Shown: piece by piece, positions 16,264-41,000 of the stretch
How the letters are laid out: each line of letters opens with the position of its first letter
Position numbering within the stretch: position 1 is the first letter of the stretch
Assembly: GCF_964204645.1 (NCBI RefSeq)
Contig: NC_134031.1
Location: 17,099,807 to 17,163,806, forward strand
Direction of reading: 5' to 3'
Origin: Tubulanus polymorphus
Taxonomy: Eukaryota > Animalia > Nemertea
Length of the DNA stretch: 64,000 nucleotides
Translations under genes and position numbers: made by a program
Notes under the pieces: generated by a model
Database searches by the model: none
The model's input: only the letters and a program-made list of their open reading frames with translations
What the model was told of the DNA's origin: nothing

Positions 16264-16288
16264 CGACACAACATCTCAATTGTAGATA

Positions 16289-16324: not shown

Positions 16325-19300
16325 TTGGGTTATTTATTTATGGCGGTTTCGAGGACATTAATACATACCTCCAGCATTGATTGCTGCTTGAAAATTAGCG
16401 TTTGTTTTCGTGCCTTCGGGTGATTCTCCGATAATAAGGTACCGGCATCGCTTTACTGTGGCAAGCATGGATCCGCCAGGTTCGTTAGTGGTTAGCAGAT
16501 TACCGCGCTTCAATTTATTCTACATTGCAGTTACTTTTCTTATTGGTAAATCATTTTTCAGTGAAATCAATACCACACGCTGTGAGTGAGAAGGTGACCT
16601 CTATTCGATGACTTGTTTGATGATATTACGATTTAGGTGCCTAAAATTTCAACTCAATTTTCACTATGAATAACCCGGTATATTGTTTGACTATTGTTAC
16701 GCGTTGAATTAGTTCGAATTCATTGCAGGAAAATGTTTAGAAACGTTTTGATTCTGTGATACACCGGCAAATGACAGTATACGCTACAATGCAAACCAAT
16801 TAAAAATACACTTATTTTGTTTCATTCATTGCTGAATTTTTCAGTTCTGCTGTGGTTTGAAAGTATCATCGAAATTACGTAATTTTTAGAAAAACTAATG
16901 CTGTAGATTTATGAGTGGAAACTTTAGTTTAACGATGTTTATCGCGCAGACTACTGGCTTTTGAAATGAAAAAAAGTCTCGGCCTGGATCTGTGAATCCC
17001 AATTTCAATAAATGTCAGTAGATATAACCGAGATACTCTGCATCGATAAAACTATATGTGAAGCTTCCACTCACTAAAATTCATCGTATAATTTTCACTT
17101 TCCTTTTGGTTTGATTTTTTGTGATGCATGAATCTATTTTGTGCTTGTATATGATCTGTGTACAGTACTCGGAAGGGATCAATGGTGCTTTTCTAAAGCC
17201 GGTAGTTTTAGAATGATGTGCACCCATTTTGCGAGGTTTTTTTTTCTGAATGACCTAATACTGTAATATGCGCTGACATCAGGTTTCATTCGACATTGAC
17301 CGCATTATCGAAAGGGCTTTTTATTTGCATTTCGAGGAAATCCTATACACTATAAACTGTCTAGGCGGTTCAATTGAAAAGTCTATATTACCAATGTGTG
17401 CATTGTCGACACTAGGAAGTCGCATTGCCAGTTTTAGCTGTTGGTAACAGCTTGTTCATTAAACCTCCTGATATGAAAATCGTCATAAAACTTTGAATGA
17501 AAACAAAGTATTATGAAAATGACTGACGTATATATCATCAGATTTTTGGAAAACGCAATCCTCATTGAAACATTATTCTACTACCGCATTCTAAGCCTGT
17601 AATTATATAGGGTGTAAATGTTATCAAACTGTGATAGAAGAATCGAAATGAAGGACCTTTGAATAACAGATAAATAGACTCTGCTCGCTTCAGCCAGTTT
17701 ATTCCCTAAATTGTTTGCTAAAATAAAAGCGGAGTCTACTGTGTAAAAGCTGATTTATCCTTCTCCGAGATCTTTTCATCGGGGAAATTGTTCAATCCTT
17801 TCCTGATTATTATTATTATTATTAATATTAGTATGTTATTAGTTTATAAGTTATCTTTTTTGTACGTGCTGTGCTTATTCCGTAGAATGAGGACACCTCG
17901 ACGCGTGGTGTCACCAGAATTTCTACCCTTCGATCGGTTTGACTTCGAAACTATCGAAAACACGCGATTCTAGTGACGTCACGCGTCAACGTATCGATAT
18001 CCGATTATCGGTGTCCGGAGGAAGGAATCGATCGAAATTTAATGTTGTTAACCGATGTTACGTTTATTGTAAATACATAAGAACAAAATGATTTAATATA
18101 TGATTATATACCGGTATACGAAATGTACATACACATTCATCATTCTAGTCGCCTGCTTTGTACAGAAATTTGCTAATTTTTTTTTTTTTCGTCAAATTAC
18201 GCCGGTTGCAGTGTTCTCGGTAAAGTTTGGCCCTCGAAAAGAGTTAAGATTAGTTCAGTTCAAATGTTTAACACTCGAAGAGTGAAATGTTTACCGAGAA
18301 CCGTCCGACTGTGTCCAGCGGTATAAGGAAGTCTTGTATCGTTGAAATGTATGTCTGCAGAAATTATTTGTCCGCGCGTTTTGAAGTTGTCGGGGAGGTG
18401 TTAGGATATTTCTGGTGAAATGAAAAATAAAATACATTAACTCAATAATCTGACTGCGGGGTTTGTGTATGGTGATTTCCATCTTAACCATTTATTTGTT
18501 TGTTTCTAATAAAACACTGCTACGAAGTAGTAGTTTTTTGAGGTTTGATGTATTCTAGACAAATTACCCCCCATTTAATGCCGTAATCGCTCTAATTAGT
18601 AGTCGAATAAAACGCTCGAATCCGTGTAAAATGTAGATAAATGAAGAAGTCCCACGACTCGAATTTTATCATTCAAAATTCTATGGCGGGGACTTCTTTA
18701 TTTAATTACTTTAATGATTCGTACGAAAATTAGACGTGAATTTTCATCATCATATGTTCGATTTTCTTTTTCATCGGGCTTTTGATCTATATTTATGGGG
18801 CTGCGCTTTGAAAGCGCTATCTAACTTAATGGGAGTTTCTTTGTTGCCAAAAAACCAACACATTCATTGTCACTAATATTCATGTGTACAGGATAGTCTC
18901 GATCTATTCATACATACATTGTAAATTACGTTTCTGCTGTGTGGTGATCATCAAAAATAATCAAAAACACTCTTTGAATCTATATTTTTGTAATCGCTCG
19001 TAAATTTATTCAACTGTTTTTTCGCTGCCAAGTTAAAAGAATAAATGGATCAGCATTCAGATTTATTCTTAGTTATCCAGTACGATTAGTCGATTGTACG
19101 TTGAACATTGTATTTAAGGTATTGTGTATCAGATGAAGGGAGTATATTCAAATTGATTTGCCTCATAATAAATGAATTAGGTACAACATGAAAATTCGTT
19201 TCTTATTTCACTCATGAGTGGATTGAAAATCTGAATTGAGGACTGAGGAGTTTTTGATGGCCCAGTATGCCGGATTTGAGAGCTGCGACCAGTTTCATAA

Positions 19301-19587
19301 TGAATGTGAAACTTTTGATGAGCGGATGCAACAGTAATGTGTGCGGTCGAGTCTCGTGATGCCATCGGGTTCGAATCCCTGCCGATGAAATTTCAGCGGG
19401 AGTGTTGAATAACGTCATCATAATATTAAAGGTTTACCTTCACCCGAATCTACGAGCAATCATCTCAAATGATTGCTCGTAGTGGCATCAATGAAATCTT
19501 TCACTTTATTGTGATCGGATTTAATTGTTAATTATCCACTGATCAGGAATGTCAAAGAAATCACCTTTATCTAAGAACTATCGTTTA

Positions 19588-20283
19588 TCAAATTTCTTGT
19601 TGAGTAAGGAATATATGATCTGATCGTTCACTATCCGGAATTGCGGCTGATGTAAATCGCTCTTCTGGTTTCGCGATAGCAGCGGACGACGACGAAGTAC
19701 GTAGCGGCCGCATGCTCACTTTCATCGGCGGTAAAATCAATTGCGCCGAATGTTGCCGCACGAACCGGCGTTCGTCTGCTGTATCACCATCCTTCCTGAG
19801 ACTGCTTCCGAATATTTGCGAGTCGGTCATCGTACGATCGATGACTTCTAATTGTTTACGTTTGTTCAGTAATTCCCGTACGAACTTCCTCCGCCTAACC
19901 TCGGGTGACATGTCCCGAATTTCCGCGTGGATCAACGGATAAACGTCATAGTAGGTCGAGTTCGGGCCGTAACGGCCCAAATTACCCGTATTCGTTGGGT
20001 CGGCGGCGAAATGTTTGGCCACCCCGCGCAGAACGTTTTTGTAAGCGATATGATCGCGCATGTTCTCGCGTAAATGACCGGCAAGACCTGCGGATTTTTG
20101 CCGATAGAATTTCTCCTCTTGTTTTATGTGATACTTCCTCACGTCTAAGTGTTGTTGTTCGTTTTTGTTGAGAGCCACGACTTTATTACTTCTGGCGTTA
20201 CATTGTCGTTTAATCGACTCGATTTTCGATTCGTAATGATACGATCGATTGTAGTGGTCGAAAATCAGTTTACGACCCGGCAT
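19588..20283 (-). CDS. Uncharacterised basic protein, single coding exon, ~231 aa (probable start MPGRKLIFDHY)
   Basis: Long ORF intact in both copies. By eye there are 6 synonymous and 2 non-synonymous differences between copies, consistent with a real coding gene. No family recognised. Confidence 0.75.
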   Translation of the reverse strand: MPGRKLIFDHYNRSYHYESKIESIKRQCNARSNKVVALNKNEQQHLDVRKYHIKQEEKFYRQKSAGLAGHLRENMRDHIAYKNVLRGVAKHFAADPTNTGNLGRYGPNSTYYDVYPLIHAEIRDMSPEVRRRKFVRELLNKRKQLEVIDRTMTDSQIFGSSLRKDGDTADERRFVRQHSAQLILPPMKVSMRPLRTSSSSAAIAKPEERFTSAAIPDSERSDHIFLTQQEI

Positions 20284-21785
20284 CGTCGTGCAGATGATAA
20301 TCCACAAGAGTTGAACTAGAATCGAATTTGGCACCCCTTTAACGGTAAACCCACGTACACTAATCCAAAAGATAGACAAGTACCCTTTTGGGGGAATCCT
20401 TCCACACTAATGTCACCGAAAAAGGAAACTATCTCATCACTGTGCAGGGGCTTTCCATTAAATGCACACACATGTATATACGCATAGCTTTTCATTTTCC
20501 TTCTCAAATTATACTTACGCGCTATTCATCATTTGGTGTTGACAAAAGATCGACGCCGAAAAAAGCGCTAATTTCCCATTCCTGCACATTAGAGTGCGGA
20601 TGGCTATACAATTATGTCAGCGATATTGACTAGACGGTCCCACGGGTGTCGTAAAATATTTAATAATAAGCTGTCAGCTATTGAAAATTCATGGGAATCC
20701 GAAATATATCATAGACAAAACAATGTTTATACAAGCTCGGAACTTTACCTGACGACGCGGACGCGAAACAATCAACGATATCTCATGATATCAACGCAAG
20801 AATATCATATTCAATTCTCCGTTGCCTTCTCGATCCTCGCTTTAACTATGATCGCTGAATTTACCCAAAATAGTAATGAAACCAAACGCGGAAACTTTTG
20901 CAACTTCCCAATTCAGGCGAGATTCAATATTTTGATGATGTCTCTATTAATCCTTGTAATGGCTGTAGTAAATGCCAATAAGGTAAACATAGCGAAGCTC
21001 GGCAACTACACGGCAATTTCCATACCATTACATTAAAAATTACTTTTAATGAGAAAAAATTGCAGCTTCTTTCTACCAATGGAAACCGCCTCTTGTATAC
21101 CGGTACTTAACGAACTTAGCAAATATATTCAGGTTTCAAATGACTGTTTACTTAAGTTGTTTAAAAATACTCTCCAATGTTCTGGGGTGTTTCACCGGGT
21201 AGTGATTACGCATAGAGGGACCTACTCGGTTTGTCGCATCTGTCAATCACTTGCGATAGAGCTTTTGAAGAAAACGTCATACAATTGAAAAGAAAAACAA
21301 CTGGATATCTTGACCGGAGTCGTCAGGCGACAAATTATATATCCTACGGGCAAACTAGGTAAAAATTCACGGGAAACTAAACCCTGGGTTTATATAAAGT
21401 AGCGTCTTTCGTACGTCAAATAAAGGTCAGATATGAAATGGAATCGCCAGATGTTTTGTTTTACTGTCGTTGATTATTCTTTCAGAGATATTTTTTCTTA
21501 CTGTCCACGAAACTCGGATCAGGTTAACAAGTATTTCACGCATGCACTTTGCTTACTTGTCCCTCTTTCATTACCTCAACGTCTATCATTTTTCGAAGAA
21601 AAGTCCTTTCATTCTTGCCCCCCCCCCCCGCCAAAAAAAAATAAGTCCATTAGAATTAGAATATGGCTTCATAGCAACTGAATCAGTGAATGAGTATTGA
21701 AACAGAGAAATGAATATTGCTCGATGCAGGACCGCGACCTGTGGAGGACTGGCCTGTCTACGTCACGTATTAGTTGCATAGATAC

Positions 21786-21798
21786 GTGACCTAGCAAC
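21786..21798. promoter_or_regulatory. Candidate RFX X-box GTGACCTAGCAAC; second weaker site GGCTTCATAGCAAC at 21665-21678
   Basis: Resembles the GTNNCC-N(0-3)-RGCAAC X-box consensus, lies ~100 bp upstream of the ATG at 21900, and is present in both copies. Confidence 0.35.
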
Positions 21799-21899
21799 GT
21801 CTTCTTTGAGGAAAAACGCCCTGAGCCCAACTTCACCGTTTTCACACTAAATTGACGTAGAAGTAATAAATTCGGTATCATAATTTAAAAAAGTGTGTT

Positions 21900-22964
21900 A
21901 TGGATTGGAATTGGGGACAGAACTCCACCTGTGGCCGACCTCCAAGTCGCCAACTTCCCAGCACAGCGAGTGAGTATATACGCGACGAAGAATCTGAAAC
22001 GAAATTTGACCGAAAATAATTTAAAAAAAAATCAATGATCAATTCTTAATGAACAACTTATTGAATGTTACTGATAATGTTTAATGAAGGTTTTCGTCAC
22101 TTTCTTCGACGATGGCAGAAGCATCAACGCGTTCATGGTTTCGAATCGTTGTTGATGTTTATCAGAGAAATCTAATCGTCTTTTCATGATTTTCAATGAA
22201 ATCAAACAAAATATAATTAGACTAGTTGATGATACTGATGATACAAATATTGATATAAATCTTAGGTCAATACGTATTATCATCAGTCTTAATCATTGAT
22301 AAGAGCGGGCTACATCCGTATCGTTAAAGAAAAGTAAAATATTACCGCAATTCAAATTCATTTGCAAAATGATTTTCGATAATTTACAGAGAAAAATAAG
22401 AGTAAAGAAAATATTGACTGCAGTTCATTCACATTGACTTCGAAATTGAAACAACAAGAACCACTTTATATGCGATCAGTAGCAGGCTACAAAAACGCCA
22501 TTTTCAAAGATCCCGCCTGGAAACAATCAAAACTATTCCCGGGTATCGGTAACGGCAAGCGCAGAAGCCTCACGACTATATCGCCAACTGGTATGTATCA
22601 AATTACAAACAATATCAGCTCACGCGTAATAGATAATGCAACGACTGTATGACATATTAATATTACAGATTGCACTGGAGACATTAGACTGCCGCAAATT
22701 GATGCACGAATGAAGAAAAAGCAATCGAACAATGACTTGAACTGGGGTAGAAAATCTCGTGTGAACGTCTCACCAATTTATGACGACGACGAAGTGATTG
22801 CCCGACCAATCACTCCACCAAAACCAGTCGCTAAACCTTCCGCTTTGATTCCGCTGATCTTCGATAAGAGCTACACCGAGGCTATGAAAGAAAATGCGAA
22901 GAAAGATAAGGAAAAGAAGAATGGCCGCCGCAAGAAATCGAAGGCCAAGCGCGGAGTCACCTAA
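21900..22964 (+). CDS. Uncharacterised Lys-rich protein, 3 coding exons (21900-21969, 22390-22590, 22669-22964), ~188 aa
   Basis: GT-AG introns with matching phases join MDWNWGQNSTCGRPPSRQLPSTA-KKNKSKENIDC...SLTTISPT-DCTGDIRLPQIDARMKKK...KAKRGVT*. Intact in both copies. Confidence 0.65.
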
Positions 22965-24510
22965 ATCGCAGTAAATTTTCCAAACTTTCATTTTCACCTA
23001 TGAATGAAGATACACGAACATTCCGCACAAAAATAATGAAAAATCATACTTTTATTTACAGCAAACCATCGAAACAAACCAACAAGTCAACGCATTTTTT
23101 AGCATTTACCATATCAGATTATAATCATTGAAATCTTACGAAATTATCTGCATCGAACTGACATCAAATTGGATCGGCTACCTTAGATTTGCCGAGATAG
23201 GGAAACCTAAAAACGAGAAAGAAGAACAGCGAATTGGCGATAGAGGGAAACGAAAGGACAATCATTGCTAAAGATGTGTCGATATGAAAATTGTATTCCC
23301 GGACTAGCCTTGTGTAGCGAAGGAATGATCTTCCATTCGCGGAATGATTAGATATTTCCAGCTTGATTTACAAATCTGGACTCCAAACCCACGAGGGCCT
23401 GCGTGAGTTGAGCAATAAGATTGTAATGATTGCTGGATGATTTTGTGCAGTATGACTACGAGTTGAGACTGAAAGAGCGGCGGGAGCGTGAAAGCGAACG
23501 GAAATGTCAACCTGTTAAATGGATGTGAATTCTCTCTTTGGACTCGTTATTTGAGCGGAGGGAAACAAGTTTGGAATGTAACCAGTTTCTGTAGAGTCGA
23601 ATTGGGGCCTCAATTCGATTTTCTACTGTGGAACTGAGGGATGGTATATCTTATATGTCAGTTTGTTTTAGGGTTTTTGATGACGTGAATGTTCTGTTCG
23701 TAGTGACCCCGGTCTGTAAAAATTAACTGTTAGAATGTGTAAAAACAACGACAAATGCTTTAATTCAGAATCGAGTGTATGAATGTGGATTCTGGGCACT
23801 GTCCAGCAGGATCTGAGTGTACGAAAGTGGATCCTTGAAATGTAACATGGAATATTTGATATTATTTAACGGTTTTTAGGAGTGTTATATCTCGTGCTGT
23901 TGATTTTACGGTGTTTTGTTAATAATTCACGACGATCTAATTTTTTTTCGCTCTTTCCAAATTTATACGTGAATGTTTATTCGTCATCTTTCATTTTCAA
24001 ATATATAATCTTTTAAATGCGTTATGTAATGAATATTTTTGTTTGAGTTCGTGTGTTTTGAGAAAATTGTTTAAGTAAAATATACGAAAAACTTTTATGG
24101 CGAATGACTACAGCAAATGGGATTTACGTACAAACTATGTTTACTTGTTGGTAAACAGTATTACATTCGTTGTTTTACCCTATACCCATTATGTTTGTTT
24201 GTTTCTGTTGGAGAACTCATCTGAATTCTTGCCTGTCTCTACCCTGCTGCGTTCCCCTCTCGACTCCATCGTTCTCTATTTACCCGGTTAAAAATGATTA
24301 CTGCCGTTAATGGAGATGGTGTCAAACATTACAAAAAATCTATTTGCCCTATTCCAAGCATAGGATATTCAAATAATGTAGTGTATCCCAAATATTGGTT
24401 TTGTGAGACGAATGATTACTGTTCATGTGTCCACCGTCCTTGGAAGATCCTGCAGGTGACTGTTTAGTTGTCCTCAGCAGCGGACGCCAGATCAAAACGA
24501 CACAATCATC

Positions 24511-26275
24511 ATGTCAAATCTCTCAGGAATATTTATGATTTCGTTGATAAGCCTCTTTCATCATAAAGGTAAGTTTAAAGTTCTATTTCTAAACAAGCCA
24601 AATTATCATCCAGAATCCAGAATACAATCTATGGAAATCATTCACAATCAATGGTCATTAACGGTGGTTCAGTTAAGAAGGTTCAGACCACGACTTGTCT
24701 TAGAAAGTGTGTAATTATTTGTTTTATCTAAATTTCTTCATAAAGAAATCGCATCGTTAACCGACGAGGAACGTTGTACGGAAGATTTAACGTCGAGACC
24801 TAGGAATGTTTTGGCCAGGCCAGTTTTGAACCAAAGTGATACCGTTGAACTTAAAATGATGTTTGGTCTCGTTCAAATCATCGAAGTCGTAAGCTAAAAA
24901 TCTACTTAGATATCCTAATTAAATCGAACTATATTTTCTGTCAAATCCATTCGCTAATCAATCTTTTAGAACGAACGAAAGCAAGCTATCACACTAGGAT
25001 CCTACGTAGGAATGGTACGTTGAAAGTGCTTATTCGAACTTCTCTACTGAAAATGCAAAGGGGTCAGAATAATCTAAACATAGAAACCCAACTAACGCCA
25101 GATGTAAATAGTTAAGAGTTCTTGATGATTTCAGAGTTGGACAGATAGAACGTTAACGTGGAATGCTTCTTACTATGGCGGTGTCAAAACTGTGCATATG
25201 TTCTTAAAGGATATTTGGTATCCGGATGTAGTTGTTAGACTCGGGTATGACAGTGATATTGATGAGTGTCAACTAATGATTTATTTTCACCTTACAATAC
25301 ATCCAGATTTGGACGATGATATAATTTCAGAATTCCAATGGCGATTAGTTTACGAGACAGCGATGAAAACACCAGAGTTGTCGCCCATTGCAATGGAACG
25401 GTATTTTGGTGTCCTGCATTTCGGCTGAGTATGAGTACATCCTTTGACATGACGTATTTTCCTTTCGATTCTCACAACGTCACTGTTGAGTTTGAAAGTT
25501 GGACTTATAGCGCAGAAGAACTGAAGATGGTCGCCATGTACGATCAAGTGGAAACATCTTTGTTTGTCGCTAGTGAAGAATGGAAGCTTGTTAAGACGTA
25601 CACATACGAGACCGCATTAGCCATTTTTCCCTATCCGCGATGGGGAAGGTTTAGAGCGACATTTCTGATCAGCAGGAAGCCGGCTTATTACGTGATAAAC
25701 ATCGTCATACCACTGATCGCATTTTCCTTGCTGACTCAGATGGTTTTCTTATTGCCACCGGAATCAGGAGAGAAATTATCGTTAAGCGTAACAGTTCTCG
25801 TCACGTGTTCCGTTTTTCACTTGCTTCTCGCCGATCTGATACCCAGAACATCGAACCCACCGATTATAGGTATTTTGTTTAGCAATTCGTTCAAATGGAT
25901 CTCTCATTTACCGGCTCATTAGGTACAGCACGGATTCATGCATATAATCAGACAATTTATTTTATCTTCATTTCAGTTATCTATATTACATTCATGCTGA
26001 TGATGCTGATTTTATCGGTCATTCTCTCCGTCTGCGTTATACGCATTTCCTTCCGGAACAACTATCCCGTCCCTGATTGGTTGCGAAAGTTCGTTGACGT
26101 CATCAGTCGTAAAGCCGAAGATTCCACTGCACCGATGACGATGACCCATTCACGAAACGACGGCCGAGTCTGGATGCGTGTCGCAAAAACTTTGGACAGA
26201 TTAATGTTTATCATATATCTTGGCATCACTTGTTTAGTCACCATTTGCTGTTTCGGAGCATTGATGGTAAAATAG
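24511..26275 (+). CDS. nAChR-like pentameric ligand-gated ion channel subunit lacking the Cys-loop cysteines, paralog A1 (6 exons, 397 aa)
   Basis: Exons 24511-24568, 24746-24888, 24970-25014, 25135-25244, 25331-25869 and 25977-26275 total 1194 nt in frame. Motifs: RPVLNQSD, QIIEVNERKQ, WTDRTLTWN, IWYPD, YFPFD, SWTY, RKPAYY, ESGEK, four TM helices, WMRVAKTLDR. Confidence 0.93.
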
Positions 26276-27249
26276 ATATTGCAGGGAGTAAAACTGGCTC
26301 AATCGTAACTAATCAAAGATTTCAGTTCAATCCTTTTTCGAGTAGAGATAATTCCCAGAATTTTCATGAAATTCCCATCTTCCATCGAGGTAAAGCTTCC
26401 GCGATTGGAGCGGATGGAACATTAAAAATTACGATACACCAGCGTTCTTAACTTGCACTGTTCGGCTATGTAAACAGTAATCAATTAAAAGCTTTAAAGT
26501 AGGTCTACTTGTCACATCTCACTAAAGCCATATCTACATAAACACTCTCGAAAGAGATGAACTCAGGTAAAATGTATTTCGATGAAAGGGTTGATAGTCA
26601 AATCTTATTCATACATTCTCGTATTTTCTGTTTGACCTAAATCGCCCGGTAATACGTTCTTTTCAGTTTGTTAAAATCTCTACCAAAAATCCTATGATGT
26701 GTTTATTTGTAATTATTTTTACGAATAATCTTGTCTTTATTGATATCTATATTCGATCGTGCGTATTTTGAGAAAATTTGTCGATGGAAAATACATGAAA
26801 AAGCAAGGCACTAGAGCAAATTGGATTCACGTACAATCTGTTGATTTGTTAGTTATTTATTAATGATCTGTATAACATTCGTTGTTTTAACCTTATGAAT
26901 TATGTTTGTACGAGTCTCAGAGGACTCGTTTGAATTCTTGCTTGTCTCTCTTAATTGTGTGCGTCTGTCGTTGTCTATAATCCACTCGGTCAGAACATGA
27001 TTGCCGCGGATAATAGAGATGGTTTTGAACGTTGCAAAGGAATCCATCGTCCATACTCTATTTAAATGAAAATATTGTGGTATCGCGTGTTTGTATCAAA
27101 TATTGATTTAGTGTGATGAAATGAGAGTGTAGCAGAAATATATCTTTTAATGTCCACCATCCTTGATCCGACGTCCCTGTAAGTCATAAGTGTAGTTGCC
27201 ATTAGTCACCAGTAGCCAGCAGACGTTAAATCAGAATCATCCAATCACC

Positions 27250-29008
27250 ATGTCAAATCTCTCAGGAATATTTGTGATTTTATGGATTGGTCTCTTTCAT
27301 AAAGGTACGTAAGTTTTAGAGTTATTTCTGAGCAGGCCAAGTTAATCATCCAGAAAATTTCGTTATGGCGAAATCAACCAAAATCAATGATCATTAACGG
27401 GGGTACAACACGACTTGTCTTAAAAATGTGTGATTATATGTTTCACCTGATTTTTTTTATTATTAAGGAATTGCATCGTTAACCGACGAGGAACGTTGTA
27501 CGGAAGATTTAATGTCGAGACCTAGGAATGTTTTGGCCAGACCAGTTTTAAACCAAAGCGATACCTTTGAACTCAAAATGATGTTTGGTCTTGTTCAAAT
27601 CATTGATGTAGTAAGCTAGAAATCTACTCGAATATGATACTTATCTACTTACATTTTGCTATTTTCATTTCATCTGCTAATCAATCTTTCAGAACGAACG
27701 AATGCAAGCTATTACGCTGGGATCCTACGTAGGAATGGTACGTTGGAAATCCTTATTCGCGCCCTTTATTCCAAATGCGAAGGAAGCCAGAACAATCAGT
27801 ACAAATCAAAAACCAAATGCTTTGTTGATAGTTAGGAGTTCTTGCTATTTTCAGAATTGGACAGATAGAACGTTTAAGTGGAATGCTTCCGACTATGGCG
27901 GTGTCAATACGGTGCATATGTTCTTAAAGGATGTTTGGTATCCGGATGTAGTTGTAAGACTCGGGTATGACACAGTGATATTGATGAATGTTTAACTGAT
28001 GATGTATTTTCACCTAATCATACATCGCATTTATGACGATAGTATATAATTTCAGAATTCCAATGGCGATTAGTTTACGAAACAGCGATGAAAGCGCAAG
28101 AGTTGTCGTTTATTCCAACGGTACAGTATTTTGGTATCCTGGACTTCAGCTCAGTATGAGTACATCCTTTGACATGACGTATTTTCCTTTCGATTCTCAC
28201 AACGTCACAGTTGAGTTTGAAAGTTGGACTTATTGCGCAGACGAACTTAAGATGGTCGCCATGTACGATCGAGTGGAAACATCTTTGTTCGTCGCCAGTC
28301 AAGAATGGAAACTTGTTAAGACGTACACATACGGGACAGAATTAGACATACCCCCTTATGCCCGATGGAGTAGGTTTAGAGCGACATTTCTGATCAGCAG
28401 GAAGCCGGCTTATTACGTGATAAACATCGTCATACCGCTGATCGCATTTTCCTTGCTGACTCAGATGGTTTTCTTATTGCCACCGGAATCAGGAGAGAAA
28501 ATATCGTTAAGCGTTACAGTTCTCGTCACGTGTTCCGTTTTTCACTTGATTCTCGCCGATCTGATACCCAGAACATCGAACCCACCGATTTTAGGTATTT
28601 TGTTAGCAATTCGTTCAAATGGATCTCTCAATTACCCGTTATCAAGCTCATTAGGTACAGCAAGGATTCGTGCATGTTACCTAACAATTTTATCGTTCTT
28701 TTTTTCCAGTTATCTATATTACATTTATGCTGATGATGCTGATTTTGTCGGTCATTCTCTCCGTCTGCGTTATACGCATTTCCTTCCGGAAAGACTACCC
28801 CGTCCCTGATTGGTTGCGAAAGTTCGTCGACGTCATCAGTCGTAAAGCCGAAGATTCCACTACACCGATGACGATGACCCATTCACGAAACGACGGCCGA
28901 GTCTGGATGCGTGTCGCGAAAACTTTGGACAGATTAATGTTTATCATTTATCTTGGCGTCACTTGTTTAGTCACCATTTGCTGTTTCGGAGCATTGATGG
29001 TAAAATAG
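27250..29008 (+). CDS. nAChR-like Cys-less pentameric channel subunit, paralog B1
   Basis: Same exon layout and motifs as A1. ATG at 27250, stop at 29008. Confidence 0.92.
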
Positions 29009-29385
29009 ATATTGCGGGGAGTTAAACTGGTTCAATCGTAATGAAATCGTAGACAATGACAGTGACGAGAGACGAGTGTGTGTCTCATCCCCGTCGTTGT
29101 CTATAATGTACCTGCCCGGGTTAAACATCATTACTGCCGTTGATGGAGATAGTGTCGACCATTACAAATAAAACATATCATATCTACTCTATTCAAATGA
29201 ACTGTTGATGGTATTGCGTGTTTGTATCAAATATTAGTTTAATGTGATGAAATGAGCGTACGTGGCAGAAATATAACTTTTAATGTCCACCGTCCTTGAT
29301 CCGACGTTCATGCGGGTCATGGTTTATAGTTGCCATTAGTCACCAGTAAATACATCAGACGTTAAATCAGAACCATCCAATCACC

Positions 29386-31215
29386 ATGTTAAATCTTTCG
29401 GGAATATTTGTGATTTCGTTGATTGGTCTCTTTCATAAAGGTACTAAAGGTAAGTTTTAGATTTATTTCTAAACAGGCCAAGTTATATAATACAGAAAAT
29501 CTTTTTATGGAAATCATCCACAATCACTGGTCATTAAACGGGTGTTCAGATAAATGGTTTATCACGACTTGTCTTAGAAAGTGTGTAATTATTTGTTTTA
29601 TCTGATTTTCGTGATCAAGGAATTGCATCGTTAACCGACGAGGAACGTTGTACGGAAGATTTAACGTCGAGACCTAGGAATGTTTTGGCCAGACCAGTTT
29701 TAAACCAAAGCGATGCCGTTGAGCTCAATATGATTTTTGGTCTTGTTCAAATCATCGAAGTCGTAAGCTAAAAATCCACTAAAATATCCTATTTAGATCT
29801 GCTTACATTTTCTTTTGTCAATTTCATTTTTCAATGTTTTAGAACGAACGAAAGCAAGCTATTACACTGGGATCCTACGTAGGACTGGTACGTTGAGAAT
29901 CCTTATTTGAACTTCTTAATACTGAAAGTGCAAAGGGGTCAGAATAATCTAAACATAGAAACCCAACTAACGCCAGACGTAAATAGTTAAGAATTATTGG
30001 TGATTTCAGAGTTGGACAGATAGAACGTTAACGTGGAATGCTTCCGACTATGGCGGTGTCAAAACTGTGCATATGTTCTTAAAGGATATTTGGTATCCGG
30101 ATATTGTTGTTAAACTCGGGTAAGTCACAGTGATATTGACGAATGTTAAACCGATGATTTATTATCGTCCAAAAAATATCATCTTGTTTTTTGACGATGT
30201 TAAATTTCAGAATTCCAAAGATGATCAGTTTACGAGACAACGATGAAAGCACAAAAGTTATCGTTTATTTCAATGGAACGTTATTTTGGTATCCTGCAGT
30301 TCGGCTCAGTATGAGTACACCCTTTGATATGACGTATTTTCCTTTCGATTCTCACAACGTCACAGTTGAGTTTGAAAGTTGGACTTATAGCGCAGAAGAA
30401 CTTAAGATGGTCGCCATGTACGATCGAGTGGAAACATCTTTGTTCGTTGCCAGTCAAGAATGGAATCTTGTTAAGACGTACGCATACGTGGCTGAATTTA
30501 ACATACCCTCTTATCCTCGATTGGGTAGGTTTAGAGCGACATTTCTGATCAGCAGGAAGCCGGCTTATTACGTGATAAACATCGTCATACCGCTGATCGC
30601 ATTTTCCTTGCTGACGCAGATGGTTTTCTTATTGCCACCGGAATCAGGAGAGAAAATATCGTTAAGCGTAACAGTTCTCGTCACGTGTTCCGTTTTTCAC
30701 TTGCTTCTCGCCGATCTGATACCCAGAACATCGAAACCGCCGATTATAGGTATTTGATTAAGCAATTCGTTCGAATGGATCTCTCAATTACCCGTTATTC
30801 AGTATTCAGCTCTTTTGTTACACACGGCAAAAATTCGAGCATATCATCACACAATTTTATCTTATTCTTTATTTCAGTTATCTATATTACATTTATGCTG
30901 ATGATGCTGATTTTGTCGGTCATTCTCTCCGTCTGCGTTATACGCATTTCCTTCCGGAACGACTATCCCGTCCCTGATTGGTTGCGAAAGTTAGTTGACG
31001 TCATCGGTCGGAATTCCGCCGCTCGCGAGGCTCAAGGTGAAGTTCATGCAGCAGCCAAAGACTCTACTGCACCGATGACGATGACCCATGCACGAAACGA
31101 CGGCCAAGCCTGGATGCGTGTCGCAAAAATGTTGGACAGATTGATGTTCATCATTTATCTTGGCGCAACTTGTTTAGTCACTGCTTGCTGTTTCATAGCA
31201 TTGATGGTAAAATAG
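29386..31215 (+). CDS. nAChR-like Cys-less pentameric channel subunit, paralog C1
   Basis: Same exon layout. The M3-M4 loop is longer (NSAAREAQGEVHAAAKD). Exon 1 has two in-frame donor options 9 nt apart (AAG|GTACTAAAG|GTAAG). Confidence 0.92.
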
Positions 31216-32076
31216 ATTATGGTTGAATGTTGGTTCAATCGTTGTAGGTCAATTATCTATTTGATTCATAATCAAAGATTTATGTTCAATCTTTTCAAAA
31301 TTCGTAAAGTTAAAATTCATAATTCAAATTTCCCATCAAAGTAACGCGACGATTAGTGCGAATGGAACATCGAAATCATGATACTTCAGCGCTTGTTTTG
31401 CTTGCAGTGATCGGTTTTGTAAACAGTAACCATTTGTAAGCTACAAAGTTGGTCTATTCGTTGCATTTCACTAAAGCCATATTTACAGTAACTCTGCAGG
31501 AGTATTTACTTGATTTTTACACAGATTCATACAATGCACGATTCGTATTCAGATCAGCTACCAATTAAGCGACGTAAATATTAATAGTATAGTAATAGTA
31601 CGAGTCGGTATAAACAAATGTCGCATGCCCGAACAGTTGTAACGAATATACCGGAACCCTTCTGCCGATAAGTTCCCTCCCTTCTTCATCATGTTGAAAA
31701 TTCTCTGAACTGTACATATTCCATTCATTATGAGATCAGTGAGTCTCTAAACACTGACATGTCCTGACCCACTACTAGCTTGGTTTCGCGGGCATACGAA
31801 CGCACCACGTCGTGTTTTGAATCTAAAGTAAATGGGGTCTAACTGCAGTTTGGGTCACCTTTCCACTGTGTGGCGCTAGTGTTATTAAAGAATAGTGTTA
31901 TGGTAAGGTTAGGTACTTAACCATTAGGGACGCCTAAACTGTAGCCGTTAATGGAAAAACTCCAAGCCACACTGACAGGACAAAACTGCATTCACTCCAA
32001 AAACTTTTCGATTAAATGTACTTTGAGTGTACTCGGCCTTGGCACTGTCTTTCTATACTTCCGTTTCTCTTTCTAG

Positions 32077-35000
32077 CTCAAGCGATTTCGTAAAACTAAA
32101 TCCGGTCAAAAACCTGCTGAAGACACGCCTCCTAAATCCCACAAGAAACGATCGGATACTGTTATTGAAAATGATATCAAAGACGTAAGATTAGTAGAGT
32201 AGGCTACACTTCATAAATCCCAATGCAGGCGACGCGGGGATAAGGCGCAAACGGGAGACGGAAACATGTTTCCGAGCGTTACCGAGAAACACAGTTTTGG
32301 GCATTACGTTTCTGAGACCAAACATTTGTTTCCGTGTTTCTGTGATTCCCTGCGTCGTCGCGTGCATTGGGCTTAAATCATACCTGAGATAAGCTGAGCT
32401 TTGTCTTAATCTTAATGAATGTACAACTGGATTCTTACCGTTGTCTTACCTTCTTTCCATCCTCTACGTCTCGTGGTTTCTATGTAAAACATGTCTTTCT
32501 GTTAACTATAAATTCTAACTTCGTACGAAAGATTTTTCGACTTTCTACATCGATCAGTCATCATTCACATTTGATCGCGGGTCATTCTTCTCCGCTCCAT
32601 TTATTCGATTTCAGTCCTAGTTGATTACTTATTACTCATTTTCAGATTGTCGTTGAAAATCACCTCGATGTGAATCATATTAGCGATGAGGTCGAAGAAA
32701 AAAATAAACTAAACAGGTAGGGTCTAGTCCGTTGGCCATCCAGAAAAGATTTGATTACCAACAGAAAAGGGTACTTATTCAAAAAGAAAATGGCACCGAA
32801 AACTAAGCATGCTCTATTAATCTCCATTCCTTTACTGACACAGCTGAACTTTCTGGGATATACGTTATTTCCGATGAATGGCACAAAAGTGGGTGGGAAA
32901 CAATTCGGGATTGATTTTGAAAAAGCATTCGGACACGCCCCTTGACCCAGGTCCACAGTTGTTGAGTTAAATAAGTTTTGACTAGCATGGCCCATTGCTG
33001 TTAAAACATTTGCCTTTGATTTGTTTGACCCTAGTGTCTCAAACTTAACTGTGTTACTCAGGTCCTGGTTTGTATCTATGACTATGCCCGTGGGCAAGTT
33101 TGGTCTATTTTGAGGTAATTTTAATCCATCTTTGTTTTCAGGGTAGAAACTACTGATGATGTATTTGAGTCGGGCGTTCTACAGCCGAACAACAGTGTAT
33201 CTCCGCATCGTCACGTTGGTAGTTTACCCGTGAATGGAAACTCTGCAAACCACTCAGCTGATACTGAACTACAAAACCGAAACGATTCGAATCCGAAGTC
33301 AAACGGAGGAACTTTAGTAGAATTAGACTCTAATGTTAGCAATTGTGATAAATCGGTCAATAACTCGCACATTTCCACTGCTGCTGCTGCTAAAACTCCT
33401 CCTAATTCACCGCATCCTGCAGCGGCTAGAGTAACATCTCCTTTTCAAAATCTAGGAAGGTAAGCTCGTGGAAAAAATGTTTCATTTGTAGAAGAACTAG
33501 CAGTTGTAGTTCGGATCTAGGCCCTATGACGAGTAGCTATCTTTAGTGAAATATATACCAGTAATTTTTGGTTGATACTGGTCAGAGTTGCACTAACTAG
33601 TACTGATATACAATTTTTCAGGACTACGCCATCTATTGAGGGAATGCAGCAACTTTCGCGTCAGATAAACGGCTTGTTATCTCAATCATCGTCGTATCTG
33701 AACGGCGGCGACGACGTCGAACCGGATCTGGATAATTCCCTCGCCGAACTCGAGGTAAGTTTGTCGTCCGTCATATTTATGTCATGGCAATTTATGACTG
33801 AAGAAGCCGGTGCTATGCTAGTAAAACTAACTTATCCTGACATAAACCTGACATAAATCTTTTTCTACTTTCTATAAACGCAGTTGGTAAATGTGAGTTT
33901 TTACTTAAAATCTGTAAATGGTTTAAGCTTTTTGGTCGAAGGTGAACTATTGATATGATCTTGAAATTCTCATTCATGGATGTTTATTTATGTTTCGTTT
34001 CTGTTGCAAGCCCCTCGTACAGTCTGTTTGTCCATGTGTCTTTCAGCTTTTTAATAGTCGGTTGATCTTGTTGAAACTTGGGCACAATGTTAGTATGGGG
34101 GTCTAGTTTTTTATTGCAAAGAATGGGCCGAGTGCATCACCTAACGACAGAAGTAGGCACTAAAAACTGTTTTTCGGCGACATGATCTTGAACATGACCT
34201 CGTAACTAAGGAACAGGGCTAAAATTCAAAAAGTTTTCTTGACAAAATTTAGCTACTGGCCCTAGATACAATATATCCAAATTGTAATGGGGACCAATTC
34301 ATGGTAATTTCGGAGTTCAAGCCTGAGCCAAAGATCTGTTGTCGCTTACAGCTAGTCATTCCTGTTTTTTCCAGACCAGAAACAAAGATTTAGCGGCTCA
34401 ACTAGAAAAACATAACCAAACCAATCATCAGTTATCGTTTAGTTGCGAAGAACTGGTAAGAAACTGATTCTGAATTTACAGATGTTCATTCATGTTGTTC
34501 TATGAAATACGTATATGTACTTGAATTGAATTGCCATTTTGTAGACAGGACAGAATGTTAAATTACAAGAGCAGATGATGAAAGAACGTCAACGCTTCGA
34601 GGAACAGTTACGAAAAGAGATTGGAGCTTTGAAAGAACAGTTGCAGGTAAGATTTTCTGATTCTAATTGCTGAGTTTTAAACTTCGGTCAGGGATTTAAT
34701 ATTATCGTAACAACATGGACAGAATATTTCACTAATGATTATGGTGACATTACCAATCAAATCGACATATTTATTGATACCAGTTTTAAGACCATTTTCA
34801 CCCTGTAATAGAATCGTCAAATTGCTAAGAATCATAATTTAAATGTTGTCTATTTGCGAAAAGTACTGAAAATGTTAACCTGTTTGTCTAGGTCCATATC
34901 CAGACGATTGGTATACTAGTAGCTGAGAAATCAGAACTACAATCTTCATTATCTCAATCACAGAAATCTGCTCAACAGAGACTCGGTAAGGGCTGGCTGT

Positions 35001-38000
35001 TAGGATTAGATTATGTATGCAGAAAGTGTTGATGTTCTTTAGTACATAAGAGATTCGAGTAAAATGTGGTTAGGCCGTATTAACTATTGTAGTTCCCACA
35101 GTACTGGGAAATCGAAAAAAGATTGTATTTTGCATATGATAGATTTTCCTCTTATCTTGGAAGTGTTTGGGAAATTCCTTTTATGCCTCATGTAGCATAG
35201 TTCTGGGATATCGCTTGCTTGCCCGAGGACAACTTTCTTCAGCAATTTTTCTTTGAAAAATGACCCATGAAAGCCTGTGGAATTTTGAATTCATGTTGAA
35301 CTAGGAACTATGTATCGTATTTATCATGAGATGTTTTTATTTAAAATTATTGTTAAAAATTTATTTAGATGAATTGGAAGTTCTGTCTGGCCGGTTAAAA
35401 GCATCGCGACAACGTGTCGCCGATTTGGAGAAAACGTCGACCACATCAAATCAAAGCAGTAAAAAGTTTGAAAAGGTACCGGTGATGATTATCCAATCAA
35501 TGAGTATTTATATTTAGCATAACAGAAGATGAATCAGTCATCAATTTATGCCTCATCTCATTAATTGTTGTTATCTATTATTACAGAATAGCAAAGAACT
35601 GTCGAAAGAAGTCGATCGCTTGAAAATAGAAATATACAAAGTCAGGTAAGAGTGGCTTTTGCTGTCACTGTCTGTTAGTTCTAGGGTTCGTAGCGGTTAA
35701 TGGAAAGTTGTGAAATTGACAATGTCCAATTCCAGGCCTGGAGAGTCATAGAATTGACTTCAAAATCACTGAGGTTATGGAAAAAGTCTTGGAAGGAATT
35801 GAATTTCCGAATCTTGACGTGCAGTTTTTTGTAGGCCTGTACATTCTACGTGGGTTATTACGAATGATGTTTCCTGCTTTTCATTTTTTCAGCAAATCAA
35901 GTGAAGATTTACGACAACAGAATTCGGAATTACAGGAGAAATTAAACGGTAAAGTGTCGGAGTGCGCGAACTTGAACCAGACGGTGAAAGATGTGAAACA
36001 CGAGCTCGGTATGAAAGACGTCCTCTTACAGCAGGTAAAGTTTCATTGCAAATAAAGACGAGGGCCCGGTCTCATCGTCCTCGCTTGCCAGGGTTTGATT
36101 GCCTTGTATCGGTAGAGCGAATTTGCCGGTGAAAGACTGGTTGGCTTGATACATAGACTGGTGGCCCCGAATGGCAAACTGTCCACCTAAGAAATCTTGG
36201 GCGGTGTAATAAACCAATGAAGGGTCTGTGGTCAGGTTTTCTATTGGTGTGAGCTTCAGCAGGAGGCAATCAAACCCTGTCAAGCAAGGATCGGTTTCGT
36301 GGACTGGGTATGAAAATAACTACTGGCTGTAAATCCTTAACCTGGGTGACAACCACCATAGATTGTAACAACTAAAATTTCTAAGTGTTTCTAGGGATTA
36401 TTTTGTCCCCAAATCTATGAAACTCAGCCCTGGCATCGCCCAGAGTTAGAACGCTATAACTACTGTTTCATTGGATGATGTATTTTTTGCAGCTTTCTAA
36501 TCAGAGTGCGAATAGCAACGAATCGGCGCAAATGGTGCAGTTATTGAACGCGGAGAAAGTCGAACTGACAAACCGCCTCGAAAACTACAATGAAGCATTC
36601 CAGAAATTAACCGCTGAACGGGACCAGATAGCTGTCCAGTATCAACAGTATATCGAACAGTTGAAACAGCGCGAGACTCAGTTACAGGAACAGGTATATT
36701 CCTTCCTTGAAAAAAAAAACCAAACGCCGGAGTTGTGAGTTTGAAAACGAAATACAGTCAAATTCGCTCAATTCAGCTGGGTTTAATCCAGATCTCGATC
36801 TAATCCGCCGCCAGTTTTAGAGACTGGTGATATTAACTTTAACCCGGAATTGTAATTTTAGGTTGAATCTTTGATCGAAGAACGAGATCGAATGCAAAAA
36901 CGACACGAAGAACTCGATGATATAATCTCACGGTTGAACTACGAACTCGGTAATTAATTGATTACTAAACTACTACGTTAGGATATTATATTCATATGTG
37001 TATTTCTTTTTGACCACGTAGCATTCAAGAATTTGGAATTTGAAATTATGTATGAATATAGATATTCTGACGAGAAAATGATAATAGGATAACTTGCTAA
37101 ACGAAATAGTATTTTATCAATACTGAAATTCCTATGAACTTATTGGTCAGCTTTAATCGGAGCCTTGAAGAATTTTTCCCGCCCGATCTTTTTGCAGCCA
37201 ATCAGAATCCGTCCGCCGGCGAAGACCTACAGACGTTAGTTCAAGAGTTGAGCGGTCAGTTACAGAAGGTGAAACTCGACTACGAGGAATTGACCGCGAA
37301 ATATCAAGCCCAAGTTCGCGATAATTCTCAGTTGAGCCGGTAAGTCAGTTAGACTAGAAATCACTTAGCTAGAAATCAGGGAATTAAAGTCAATTAAAAG
37401 TGGTCACCCTGATGAGCTTCATGATGTTTCATTAGTTTATTATCACTGACATGTACATTACGTGTGAATCATAAATAGAAATTATAGAAAAAAGACCCAG
37501 CCCAAATTAAGACTTATAAGTCACTTAATAAATGAATAGAGTTGATGTAGATAAAATTTTCCTGCAGAATTTATACTTGAAACATTGTATTCAAAAGTGA
37601 ATTTCTTTTTGACCATGCAGCGATCGAGAACATTTTGAATGTAAAAATTTGATGATCAGACAATATACTTCATGTGAATTGAAACTGTTTGTCAAGGTTA
37701 ATATGTATTATATGCGTTGAACTTGGTTTTTCAAGGTTTGTCGACGAACGAGAAGTGCGAATTCAAGAACTCGAGAGCACGGTGGAGAAACTGTCGGAAA
37801 ACTCGGTCGATCACAATCAGTTACTGGAGAATTTACAGAGCGACAAAATGGCTTTGAGTCGCGCGATGACACAGAACAAAGAACTGAAAACGCAACTCGC
37901 CGAGCTTCAGAACGGTTTCATGAAAATGGTGAGAGATTCGTCGGTGAATACGCGGAGAGGATATCCACGCGAATTGTTCTATATTTTGTAAACGATGTTT

Positions 38001-41000
38001 TGAATTTTTTCGCAGAGTCACGAGAATATGGATTTATTAACTCAACTACAAAACGAACAGCACGTGTCGAAGGAACTAGGAACTCGTTTGGGCCAGCAGG
38101 AAGATGAACTGAAAGAGATCAGGGAACAGGTATGTACTTGAAAGTGTTTTCTTATTGCTGTAGGTATGCGTATTTTTAAAACGATTCAACCGCAATTGAG
38201 CTATTGCAACATCTAGCTTCTCCAAATCTCATCATAAAACCAATCAATCTAGTCCCAAATTAAGAATGAAAAATAAAAAGTTCGAAAAGTTTCCTTGAAC
38301 TTTAGTTGATTCGACATTTCAACTTGCGAGAATATGTTCGAGATTAATTTAGTAATGATTTAGTTGTTCTTGAAGATAACTATTTGGATATAGTTGAATA
38401 AACTATAGCTCAAGAAAACTTTTTGGACTCATTCTTGATAGTGTGGGGTTTTGTATCAGTTTTACAACATGGACGGTGTTTCATTAACGGTTGTCAATCA
38501 AGTCTTTGATACATTTTAGTTGAAATGACCTTGTGGAATTTTAGTTGAAATGACTGGATTATTTGAATGTGATTCCTACGTAGGTCGTTACGAAGGAGAC
38601 GCAGTTGAGACATCTTCACGAAGAGCAGACGTTGCATAATAAACAGATGTTCCAAGCCGAACAACTCGAAGATCGAATACGACACTTCGAAGCTCAGGGA
38701 CAACTCGTCGATACGCTTCAACGAGAACTCAACTCAGCTCAGGTATTTGATTTACCATCCGAACCGCTGACTACATGAAACAAAACGTTAAGTGTAGAAA
38801 AAAAAACGCAATCAAAATAAAACTAATACTGGATTATTATGTTAATACTCAAATGCTATGAGCCAATTTCGAAACTGATTTATTATCCAAGAGTTGTAAA
38901 AATATAACAAGTTTACGATGTGATATGCGATGCCTGAAGCAGCTAGAATATAATCAGTGTGTTGTTGATTTTGGGGGAGAGACCCAAGTCGGAATTCACT
39001 TTGGAATCAGTGTTTTATGGAATGATAGCTGACTCTATGAGTCCTAGCATTTATATAGATGGGGTAGATTAATTAGTTTTACTTTGTATTATGGGTTCTT
39101 TCTTCAATCAGTCATTTGTCTATGGAAACCAACCTGTATTTAGTGTCTTGGTTTGAAAATGTCATTCTCACTGCTTTCAGGATACTATAAATGCGCTGAC
39201 CAGTCAAAATACGGAACTGAAGAATCTGCTGCGTCAAGCTAGCGAAGTCGACCAAAGTGAAAATGCCAGTGATACTGACGCCAAACAAGCGGAAATGGTA
39301 AATACATGTAGATCTTTTCTAGGTGTTAGACGAGAAGATACACAATATCCGTGTATGATGATGACGAGAGAAATCCCACAATAACGAAGCCAAGATTGAA
39401 AAATTCTATATCAGAATGGTTATATTTGAGGAGTGATGTTTCGGCTAACAACTGTTAGCCATCATCAGGCGTACTCAAAGTACTAGGTGTATTTATGCCA
39501 TTTATTAACACTGGTCTATGCGTGTCTATGTTCAGGTGCACGCCTTATCGGCGTCTGTCCGACAACTAGAAATGGAACGAAATGAAGTCCTGAATCAGTG
39601 TCGAGAGGAGACACGAATTCGACAAAGTTTGCAAGAAGAAATCATTCGACTTCAAAAGGAAAATGAGTTGCAAGGTACAGAATACTCGGCGTATGATGTA
39701 ATGATAATGGATTAGATGATAATGTTAATTGAACCTAACATCTATATGAAATACCTACAAAGAAAGCTTAACCTAGTTTAATTGAAAGCTTTGATGAACA
39801 AATGGGTTTAGAGATTGATTTTTGACGAGGTTTGATTGGACTAGGTAACTAATTCTGTATGGGGCAGAGTAGGAGAAGGCTCTATGCCAGGCTGAGACCG
39901 GATTAATACAGGGGATAACTAGCAGGCATTGATTGCATGATCTTAAAACTAGTGGATGTTTCATATCGCACAGTTGACTAAATATTGAGATGCGAGGCTC
40001 TTGAGGGATTTAGGGTTGAAATGTCGTAAAATAAGAAGCTGTTATCCAGAAGCTATGGGAAAGATTTACTTGGACCCGGTTCCGTAGTTGTGGTAGTCAG
40101 ATTTAGTTAATTTTCAAAAGCCTTGGATCTACGCTACCGGTACCGCAGTAGTTAAACGTATTCATCTTTGGAATTGTTTTGCTTTTTACGCAGCGCCGTC
40201 GATGTTGAACGGAACGTACGTCACGAAGGAACAGTTCGACGCGATGCAGGCGGCGATGAAGATGCTCGAGGACAAGTACACGTCGGTGATGCGCGATAAA
40301 GCCGATCTCGACGATCAACGCGATCAGTACGAACACATCATACTACAATTACAAACTGAAACCGATACGATCGGTGAGTAAACGAAAATACGCCGGTCAG
40401 CTCGATGTAAAAAATTGCGAGAAACGGATGTCTGCTTAAAGAATTGTGGAAACTTTTGAAAAATCGGTTAAAAATCATGAAAATTAGTGAACAATTCAAC
40501 AGTTGTCACTTGTCAAGATGTTTTTATCCCCTTTTCACGCCATATCCCGCGGAGATCATAATTTATACACACGATATGTTAATTTTTAAGAAGCTTTACT
40601 TTCTTTTTCATCCCTTAACCAACTGAGCGCCACTTTGATAATTGATGAGCACGTTCGTGGTTTCTTTTGGGGATTGAGGAAAAAATTATTGATATTTAAT
40701 TTCTAGGCGATTACATCTCGTTGTACCATCAGCAGAGAGGGGTTCTACAGCATCGAGAACAAGAGAAAGAGGAATACATTGTTCGTTTGACTCGTGAACG
40801 TGAGGATATGCAGGTAACTAAACAGAGTTGGGGATCTATCATCATTTGGCAGAATTTAGGAAGCAGGTTTGTGCGTGGATATCCACTGCGGGCTTGCTAG
40901 TAGCTGATGAGGACAGGCTATTCGAGATAGGCAGTTCTGTCTGTAGTGGCTACACGGCTGAATGTTATGGGCCCCTACTCTAACATTGGGATTTTCCTTT

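Follow-up and report, generated by a model that had tools for sequence, protein, structure and literature searches.

The disulfide bond of the Cys-loop is the namesake of its receptor superfamily, and bacterial relatives fold without it. Here, we analyzed a 64-kb stretch of DNA (C7:17099807–17163806) from the palaeonemertean Tubulanus polymorphus (Nemertea), hereafter called the window, which holds six intact genes for ligand-gated ion channels of the pentameric type (pLGICs) of 396–409 aa, all on the + strand, in which both cysteines of this loop are replaced. A first-pass annotation of the window had taken these genes for a tandem family of nicotinic acetylcholine receptor (nAChR)-type channels with an independent loss of the disulfide, a noncholinergic ligand, and a candidate chemosensory role.

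The secondary losses of the disulfide in metazoans that Jaiteh, Taly and Henin (2016, PMC4795631) describe are in the anionic (GABA/Gly-like) clade only, in nematodes, a spider, and Oikopleura, and the Cys-less sequences of the cationic clade in that study are two ciliate ones only. A primary Cys-less metazoan clade groups with protist channels and has neither GEK nor PAR (PMC4795631), and the Cys-less channels of schistosomes are likewise without GEK (PMC9874803). As to nAChRs, a single sentence mentions that 8 of 141 ligand-binding domains of the oyster are without the loop (Jiao et al. 2019, PMC6896357). Our literature search gave no paper on the pLGICs of nemerteans.

Replacement of the Cys-loop cysteines

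A six-frame motif scan of the window found FDMTYFPFD six times, always on the + strand, with three copies at 24.5–31.2 kb and three at 52.6–59.3 kb. The splice sites were read directly off the DNA, guided by the public model XP_074655702 (P0020). The six resulting models (g1–g6, Table 1) have a common exon plan of 55/58, 143, 45, 110, 539, and 299/338 nt, with GT-AG at all splice junctions and no broken frame. The E2/E3, E3/E4, and E4/E5 junctions of g2 are those of the public model, and exons 4–6 of g3 equal residues 362–689 of P0020 except for one or two residue differences (tblastn). The whole 689-aa public protein (XP_074655702.1, "uncharacterized protein LOC141909216") is a chimera across g1–g3, which runs from exon 5 of g1 to exons 2–5 of g2 and then from exon 6 of g2 to exons 4–6 of g3. 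The queries for database searches and folding were single exons or parts of P0020.

The loop reads T-(S/P)FDMTYFPFD(S/C)HN-V in all six genes, and T-x13-V thus replaces C-x13-C. In the alignment of exon 5 with human alpha4, this loop is paired with "MSTSFDMTYFPFDSHNVTVEFESWTY"; the first cysteine (C1) is changed to Thr and the second (C2) to Val. The motif scan and this alignment confirm the initial observation that both cysteines are replaced with exact spacing in every gene of the window. A search of the genome (268 Mb) with exon 5 as the query gave 28 matches. T...V was present in seven of them, namely, the six window genes and L007 (contig C7, 15.87 Mb), and the other 21, which are all the other distinct nAChR-type large exons recovered from the genome, keep C...C; the loss of the cysteines is therefore not a matter of chance. 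L007 is thus the one additional intact Cys-less paralog, 1.2 Mb away. L007 (C7:15871753–15875274, − strand) is annotated as a truncated protein of 265 aa (XP_074655687.1), but the gene at this locus is intact, and its six exons encode 406 aa that include a signal peptide and the fourth membrane helix (M4). When aligned position by position to human alpha4, none of the seven genes has two Cys residues 13 residues apart, which define a strict Cys-loop. The seven genes amount to four distinct sequences.

Of the positions with a conservation of at least 80% across 38 nAChR-type sequences from outside the family, only four are changed in it: C1 to T, Q to H, and C2 to V, all inside the loop, and L to V at the 9' position of the pore. 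In other receptors, substitutions at 9' give a higher open probability and slower desensitization. Leu is found at 9' in 84% of the 38 sequences, and Val in L008 and L010 (P0039 and P0038) as well as in the seven Cys-less genes. The 9' Val was rejected as a family-specific feature, being common to two of the three sister genes. An N-V-T glycosylation sequon lies across the former second cysteine (25476–25484 in g1, and the equivalent site in each gene). It matches N-C-T of the human alpha4 loop (FPFDQQNCT), and three aligned sister proteins are without the sequon.

Origin of the disulfide loss

In an exhaustive HMMER search that covered 1.84 billion cluster representatives, P0020 and P0001 were the only close relatives; the rest were at most 43% identical and of the nAChR type, almost all with C...C. 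A maximum-likelihood (ML) tree based on an exon-5 alignment with 66 rows and 179 columns (LG+C20, 1000 ultrafast bootstraps) was rooted on lamprey alpha7, which was checked as a true alpha7; the tree contains no 5-HT3, anionic, or primary Cys-less sequences. The anionic genes of the Tubulanus genome were seen as short exons only. The seven Cys-less genes form one clade (100/100). Their sister is L008+L011 (98/90), followed by L009+L010 (94/84) and then by a group holding three proteins of Lineus longissimus (99/96), and all these relatives keep the Cys-loop. The Cys-loop-bearing sister genes in the same genome are 39–44% identical to the Cys-less genes, and the whole nemertean nAChR-like clade is located deep inside the nAChR-type tree. 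Because the Cys-less clade is nested among disulfide-bearing nemertean nAChR-like genes, the loss of the disulfide is secondary. It stays secondary under any root except the stem of the seven genes, and a root at that stem is not parsimonious because the nemertean genes would become paraphyletic to all animal nAChRs. The clade of the seven genes in the 66-row tree includes no protein of Lineus; the loss may thus be younger than the split from the Lineus lineage, or the genes may be lost or unannotated in Lineus.

XP_052778131.1 of Mya arenaria (P0033, "alpha-6-like") has two tandem nAChR-like domains, both of which are Cys-less (S...F), and is placed in the bivalve clade of the ML tree. A single Cys-less origin with this clam gene was rejected (delta lnL 36.1; approximately unbiased (AU) test, p = 0.0012). 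The bivalve position of the clam gene and the rejection of a single origin indicate at least two losses in lophotrochozoan nAChR-like genes. One of the two cysteines is gone in P0045 (Ruditapes) and in one domain of P0031 (Bulinus). The nested clade with full support, the AU test, the GEK motif, and the exon structure thus bear out the proposal of an independent disulfide loss inside the nAChR lineage. The novelty claimed for it holds in part: the family is nested in Cys-loop-bearing genes in our tree, but secondary Cys-less nAChR-like genes are precedented in the oyster and Mya.

Fold, pore, and binding site

Exon 5 matches the Pfam families PF02931 (E ~1e-15) and PF02932 (E ~1e-11), and M3/M4 are encoded on exon 6, in keeping with membership of the pLGIC superfamily. 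The Pro-loop signatures YFPFD and ISRKP are present in 7/7 genes. Among solved nAChR chains, human alpha4 is the best match of exon 5 (E 3e-30), and exons 4–6 of g3 match muscle alpha1 (E 5e-43) and then 5-HT3A (E 8e-37) among solved structures. The fold predicted by AlphaFold for exons 4–6 of g3 (exons 1–3 were left out) consists of a beta-sandwich and helices, with a mean predicted local distance difference test (pLDDT) score of 88.6. Its nearest solved structures are the alpha4beta2, muscle, and alpha3beta4 nAChR subunits (template modeling (TM) score 0.79–0.86), and the best structural match is the alpha4beta2 nAChR (0.84–0.86). The 45-nt and 110-nt exons had been regarded as an nAChR feature, and in the Tubulanus genome they indeed also occur in nAChR genes of the canonical, alpha7-like, and sister kinds. 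The nested position in the nAChR-type tree, which is without a 5-HT3 or anionic outgroup, the matches to nAChR structures, and the exon plan place the genes in the nAChR family by descent.

Alignment with canonical subunits indicates that FPFD, the pre-M1 Arg, the -1' Glu of ESGEK, the 20' Asp, the M2–M3 Pro, the M4 motif W-RVAK-LDR, and RPV-N are kept; RPV-N, ESGEK, and the M4 motif had been noted at first sight. The pore has the features of a cation-selective pLGIC, namely, ESGEK with E265/266 and the 20' Asp (ADLIP), with Val instead of Leu at 9'. Of the aromatic box for acetylcholine (ACh), the Trp of loop B (ESWTY) alone is preserved. In loop A, which reads WYPDVVVRLG or WYPDIVVKLG, Arg stands in place of the canonical Tyr (in g3 and g6, Lys), and loop C has neither vicinal cysteines nor alignable tyrosines. 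These three loops are as originally read, but loop D is not simply devoid of its aromatic residue, since the canonical Trp position is occupied by the Tyr of GSYVG.

The change of the loop D Trp to Tyr/Phe, the loss of the loop A Tyr, and the absence of the loop C Cys pair are common to the sister genes with a Cys-loop, and the only family-specific change in the box is that of the loop A Tyr to Arg/Lys. Because the sister genes share them, the changes in the ACh box mostly predate the loss of the cysteines. A loss of the ACh site that accompanied the loss of the cysteines was thus rejected. The losses of the disulfide and of the ACh site, which the first-pass annotation had named together, are not tied to each other.

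Sequence constraint

The ratio of nonsynonymous to synonymous divergence (dN/dS) among g1–g3 is 0.27–0.55. Against L007, dN is 0.36 and the synonymous sites are saturated, so that dN/dS is not computable for this comparison. On either side of the old split from L007, the Thr, His, and Val of the loop are conserved, as is the N-V-T sequon. Variable sites amount to 17/34 in the loop E region and 12/30 in loop C, compared with 0/27 in M1 and 2/30 in M2. Loops E and C together are variable at 29/64 sites versus 48/314 elsewhere (Fisher p = 5.6e-7), and omega is 0.38–1.04 in loops E/C versus 0.13–0.33 in M1–M3. The synonymous divergence of the g1–g3 paralogs is 0.045–0.077 in M1–M3 versus 0.10–0.33 in the extracellular part, i.e., 3–5 times lower in the membrane helices (M1–M3 of exons 5–6, e.g., 25677–26050). 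The uniformity of the pore is probably due in part to gene conversion between the tandem genes.

Proposed function of the Cys-less subunits

Here, we propose, based on the sequences and the tree, that the seven genes probably encode functional pentameric cation-channel subunits of nicotinic descent, which form a ribbon-worm-specific branch without the Cys-loop disulfide. The ACh aromatic box would have been mostly dismantled earlier, in the wider nemertean clade. The ancestor of the seven genes would have swapped the cysteines of the loop for Thr and Val, and the neighboring Gln for His, with no change to the other parts of the gating and pore machinery. As the remaining machinery is intact, the loop probably needs no disulfide to fold and to couple binding to gating. 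The Cys-less subfamily would later have gained the basic Arg/Lys at the position of the loop A Tyr. Because the box is dismantled and loop A carries a basic residue, the agonist is most likely not ACh, and the family-specific Arg/Lys would argue further against a cationic agonist. The recent tandem duplicates diverge mainly in the pocket-lining loops E and C and keep near-identical helices, probably in part via gene conversion. This pattern of paralog divergence is in line with a constant channel core on which the recognition of ligands is tuned.

Several points weigh against this proposal. Vertebrate receptors generally lose surface expression or function when the two cysteines of the loop are removed (reviewed in PMC4795631), and function is therefore not guaranteed in the Tubulanus genes. 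The low synonymous divergence in M1–M3 suggests gene conversion, so that part of the pore conservation may not reflect selection. The tree is based on the exon-5 region alone (~180 residues), without an anionic or 5-HT3 outgroup. Because the public model is chimeric over g1–g3, the annotation lends no clean support to six-exon transcripts. Neither a spliced transcript nor an RNA run holding these genes was found among the runs on record. The runs found were four of unknown kind and one (2015) guessed as RNA. On 25250–31240, the contigs of the first three runs span exons, introns, and intergenic DNA and contain no splice joints. These three runs were read as genomic DNA because introns and intergenic DNA are covered, joints are absent, and the depth peaks where the paralogs share sequence. 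The 2015 run gave no match to the region, and a search for contigs encoding P0020 gave no record. This survey of the runs does not show that the genes are silent.

The genes may instead encode subunits that have an accessory or structural role and no ligand site themselves, and that would co-assemble as modifiers with the sister subunits (L008–L011, XP_074659147, and XP_074647547) or other subunits of the nAChR type. The absence of the vicinal cysteines in loop C and of the Tyr in loop A, as in non-alpha subunits, is in line with such a role, as are the very short M3–M4 loop and the small size of the family, which stands beside related Cys-loop-bearing genes in the tree. However, divergence between the paralogs is concentrated in the principal (C) and complementary (E) loops, as expected of a working binding interface, and the Trp of loop B is conserved. 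We consider an accessory role unlikely, although it retains some plausibility.

A chemosensory function, as proposed in the first-pass annotation, is doubtful. By analogy with the chemotactile receptors (CRs) of cephalopods, the subunits would be located in a sensory epithelium and gated by environmental molecules. They might then be a nemertean chemoreceptor family derived from nicotinic receptors independently of the cephalopod CRs, in which the loss of the disulfide and the basic loop A would reflect an interface re-engineered for noncholinergic, perhaps anionic, environmental ligands. The analogy consists of the origin from nAChRs, the dismantled ACh box, the tandem duplication, and the fast pocket loops with omega of up to 1.04, and the orphan nAChR-like receptors of lophotrochozoans as well as the CRs are a precedent for noncholinergic ligands (PMC10338036). 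The seven genes, which are really four sequences, are not a large repertoire, however, and no RNA run on record was found to hold them. They have six exons, whereas the cephalopod CRs are described as intronless in a preprint (PMC13174522). CRT1 was not among the 60 best PDB matches of g3 exons 4–6, which do include canonical nAChRs; it was listed for a nAChR-like protein of Haliotis.

It is very unlikely that the channels are still cholinergic and gated by ACh or choline via the loop B Trp and the loop D Tyr. The conserved Trp of loop B as the residue of the cation-pi contact, the aromatic Tyr at the position of the loop D Trp, and the cation-type pore would be compatible with this function. 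In 7/7 genes, however, the loop A Tyr is changed to the positively charged Arg/Lys, and loop C is without the Cys pair and alignable tyrosines. Moreover, Alpo4 of Alvinella keeps more of the box and yet does not respond to ACh (PMC10338036).

Lastly, decay of nonfunctional genes, in which loss of the disulfide would have begun the pseudogenization, or a second triplet that is a falsely duplicated haplotype in the assembly, is highly improbable: no transcripts were found among the runs on record, dN/dS is moderately high, the public annotation fails at the locus, and the two adjacent units are nearly identical, but all seven ORFs are intact, including that of the old paralog L007 (dN only 0.36 at saturated synonymous sites), every other strongly conserved position is kept, the divergence is nonuniform, unlike that of neutral decay, and the units differ by indels, a 1.9-kb insertion, and an uneven divergence (dS 0.007–0.059), which a true duplication fits better.

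Organization of the duplicated locus

The six genes of the window are arranged as two triplets, one in each of two directly adjacent tandem-duplication units of 26–28 kb (Table 1). Self-BLAST paired 5157–10649 with 31577–37087, 10967–23821 with 37082–49993, and 23818–31576 with 51904–59654, all at ~98% identity. Because the triplets are copies of one unit, the six genes represent three distinct genes, each present twice. The divergence between the units is uneven, with a dS of ~0.007 for both g2/g5 and g3/g6, compared with the g1/g4 value in Table 1. The extra stretch of the second unit is flanked by a perfect 496-bp direct repeat (49993–50488 and 51410–51905), and it may have arisen by local duplication or by insertion of a mobile element that has terminal repeats. 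In the 18.6 kb on the 5' side of each triplet, no gene was recognized. The ORFs at 19588–20379 (− strand) and 20614–21036 (+ strand) gave no match in a Pfam search; the former (263 aa) is the longest ORF outside the channel genes. Self-comparison found tandem-repeat arrays at 988–1697 and 3025–3665 of the window, with periods of ~35 and ~31 nt and copies that are 85–90% alike.

Table 1. Positions of the Cys-less channel genes and of the duplicated units in the window
Feature	Position	Strand	Length (aa)	Exons	Loop codons	Remarks
g1	24511..26275	+	397	24511-24568, 24746-24888, 24970-25014, 25135-25244, 25331-25869, 25977-26275	T155 at 25437, V169 at 25479	Cys-less nAChR-type gene; intact spliced ORF, GT-AG throughout; exon 5 matches Pfam PF02931 and PF02932 and aligns with alpha4 (E 3e-30)
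g2	27250..29008	+	396	27250-27304, 27468-27610, 27693-27737, 27855-27964, 28056-28594, 28710-29008	T154 at 28162, V168 at 28204	Cys-less nAChR-type gene
g3	29386..31215	+	409	29386-29440, 29620-29762, 29843-29887, 30010-30119, 30211-30749, 30878-31215		Cys-less nAChR-type gene; 13-aa insert in M3–M4 loop; loop A Lys
g4	52596..54355	+	397			Copy of g1 in second unit; 97.5% protein identity to g1; dS 0.059
g5	55330..57086	+	396			Copy of g2, 99% identical; loop FDCHN
g6	57464..59293	+	409			Copy of g3, 99.5% identical
First tandem-duplication unit	5157..31576	.				~18.6 kb without recognized gene, then g1–g3; self-BLAST
Second tandem-duplication unit	31577..59654	.				Holds g4–g6; extra 1.9 kb at 49993-51905; self-BLAST

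Comparison with known systems

The primary Cys-less metazoan clade (PMC4795631), to which the schistosome channels (PMC9874803) are related here, resembles the Tubulanus genes in having no cysteines flanking the FPxD loop and in being present in Lophotrochozoa. In contrast to that clade, the Tubulanus genes have ESGEK and the 45-/110-nt exons, and their nearest relatives are Cys-loop-bearing nAChR-type genes. The presence of GEK and the matches outside the family, which are of the nAChR type and almost all with C...C, place them outside the primary clade, whose members are absent from our tree. The cephalopod CRs (CRT1; PDB 8eis and 9e6b) are likewise derived from nAChRs, have lost ACh-binding residues, and have expanded within one lineage. 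Nevertheless, they are described as intronless (PMC13174522, preprint), are restricted to cephalopods, and have a demonstrated sensory role, and the Tubulanus genes with their six exons do not fit this cephalopod-specific clade.

The Tubulanus genes resemble the secondary Cys-less pLGICs (Jaiteh, Taly and Henin 2016, PMC4795631) in that their loss of the cysteines arose inside a Cys-loop clade, and their Thr/Val is a polar-then-hydrophobic pair, as in bacterial channels (PMC4795631). Unlike those secondary cases, Tubulanus provides a metazoan case in the cationic, nicotinic-type branch. XP_052778131 of Mya arenaria is also nAChR-like and Cys-less, but the replacements differ (S...F versus T...V), and the two clades are far apart. 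The nAChR-like orphans of lophotrochozoans (Jiao et al. 2019, PMC6896357; Alvinella Alpo4, PMC10338036) share the derivation from nAChRs, the GEK cation pore, the size of ~400 aa, the short M3–M4 loop, the absence of vicinal cysteines in loop C, an orphan agonist, and lineage-specific tandem duplication. All the characterized orphans, including Alpo4, keep the Cys-loop disulfide, whereas the whole Tubulanus subfamily has replaced both cysteines.

The Tubulanus genes descend from disulfide-bearing receptors with little else changed and have been kept across an old duplication, and their sisters retain the bond. The Cys-less genes and their disulfide-bearing sisters thus form a matched natural pair for the role of the bond and for the minimal compensating changes (Thr, His, and Val). 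This is the first described maintained subfamily of disulfide-less metazoan nicotinic-type receptors, in a phylum unstudied for these genes. Following molluscs and annelids, nemerteans are the third lophotrochozoan phylum with orphan nicotinic-like channels likely to have moved off cholinergic signaling.

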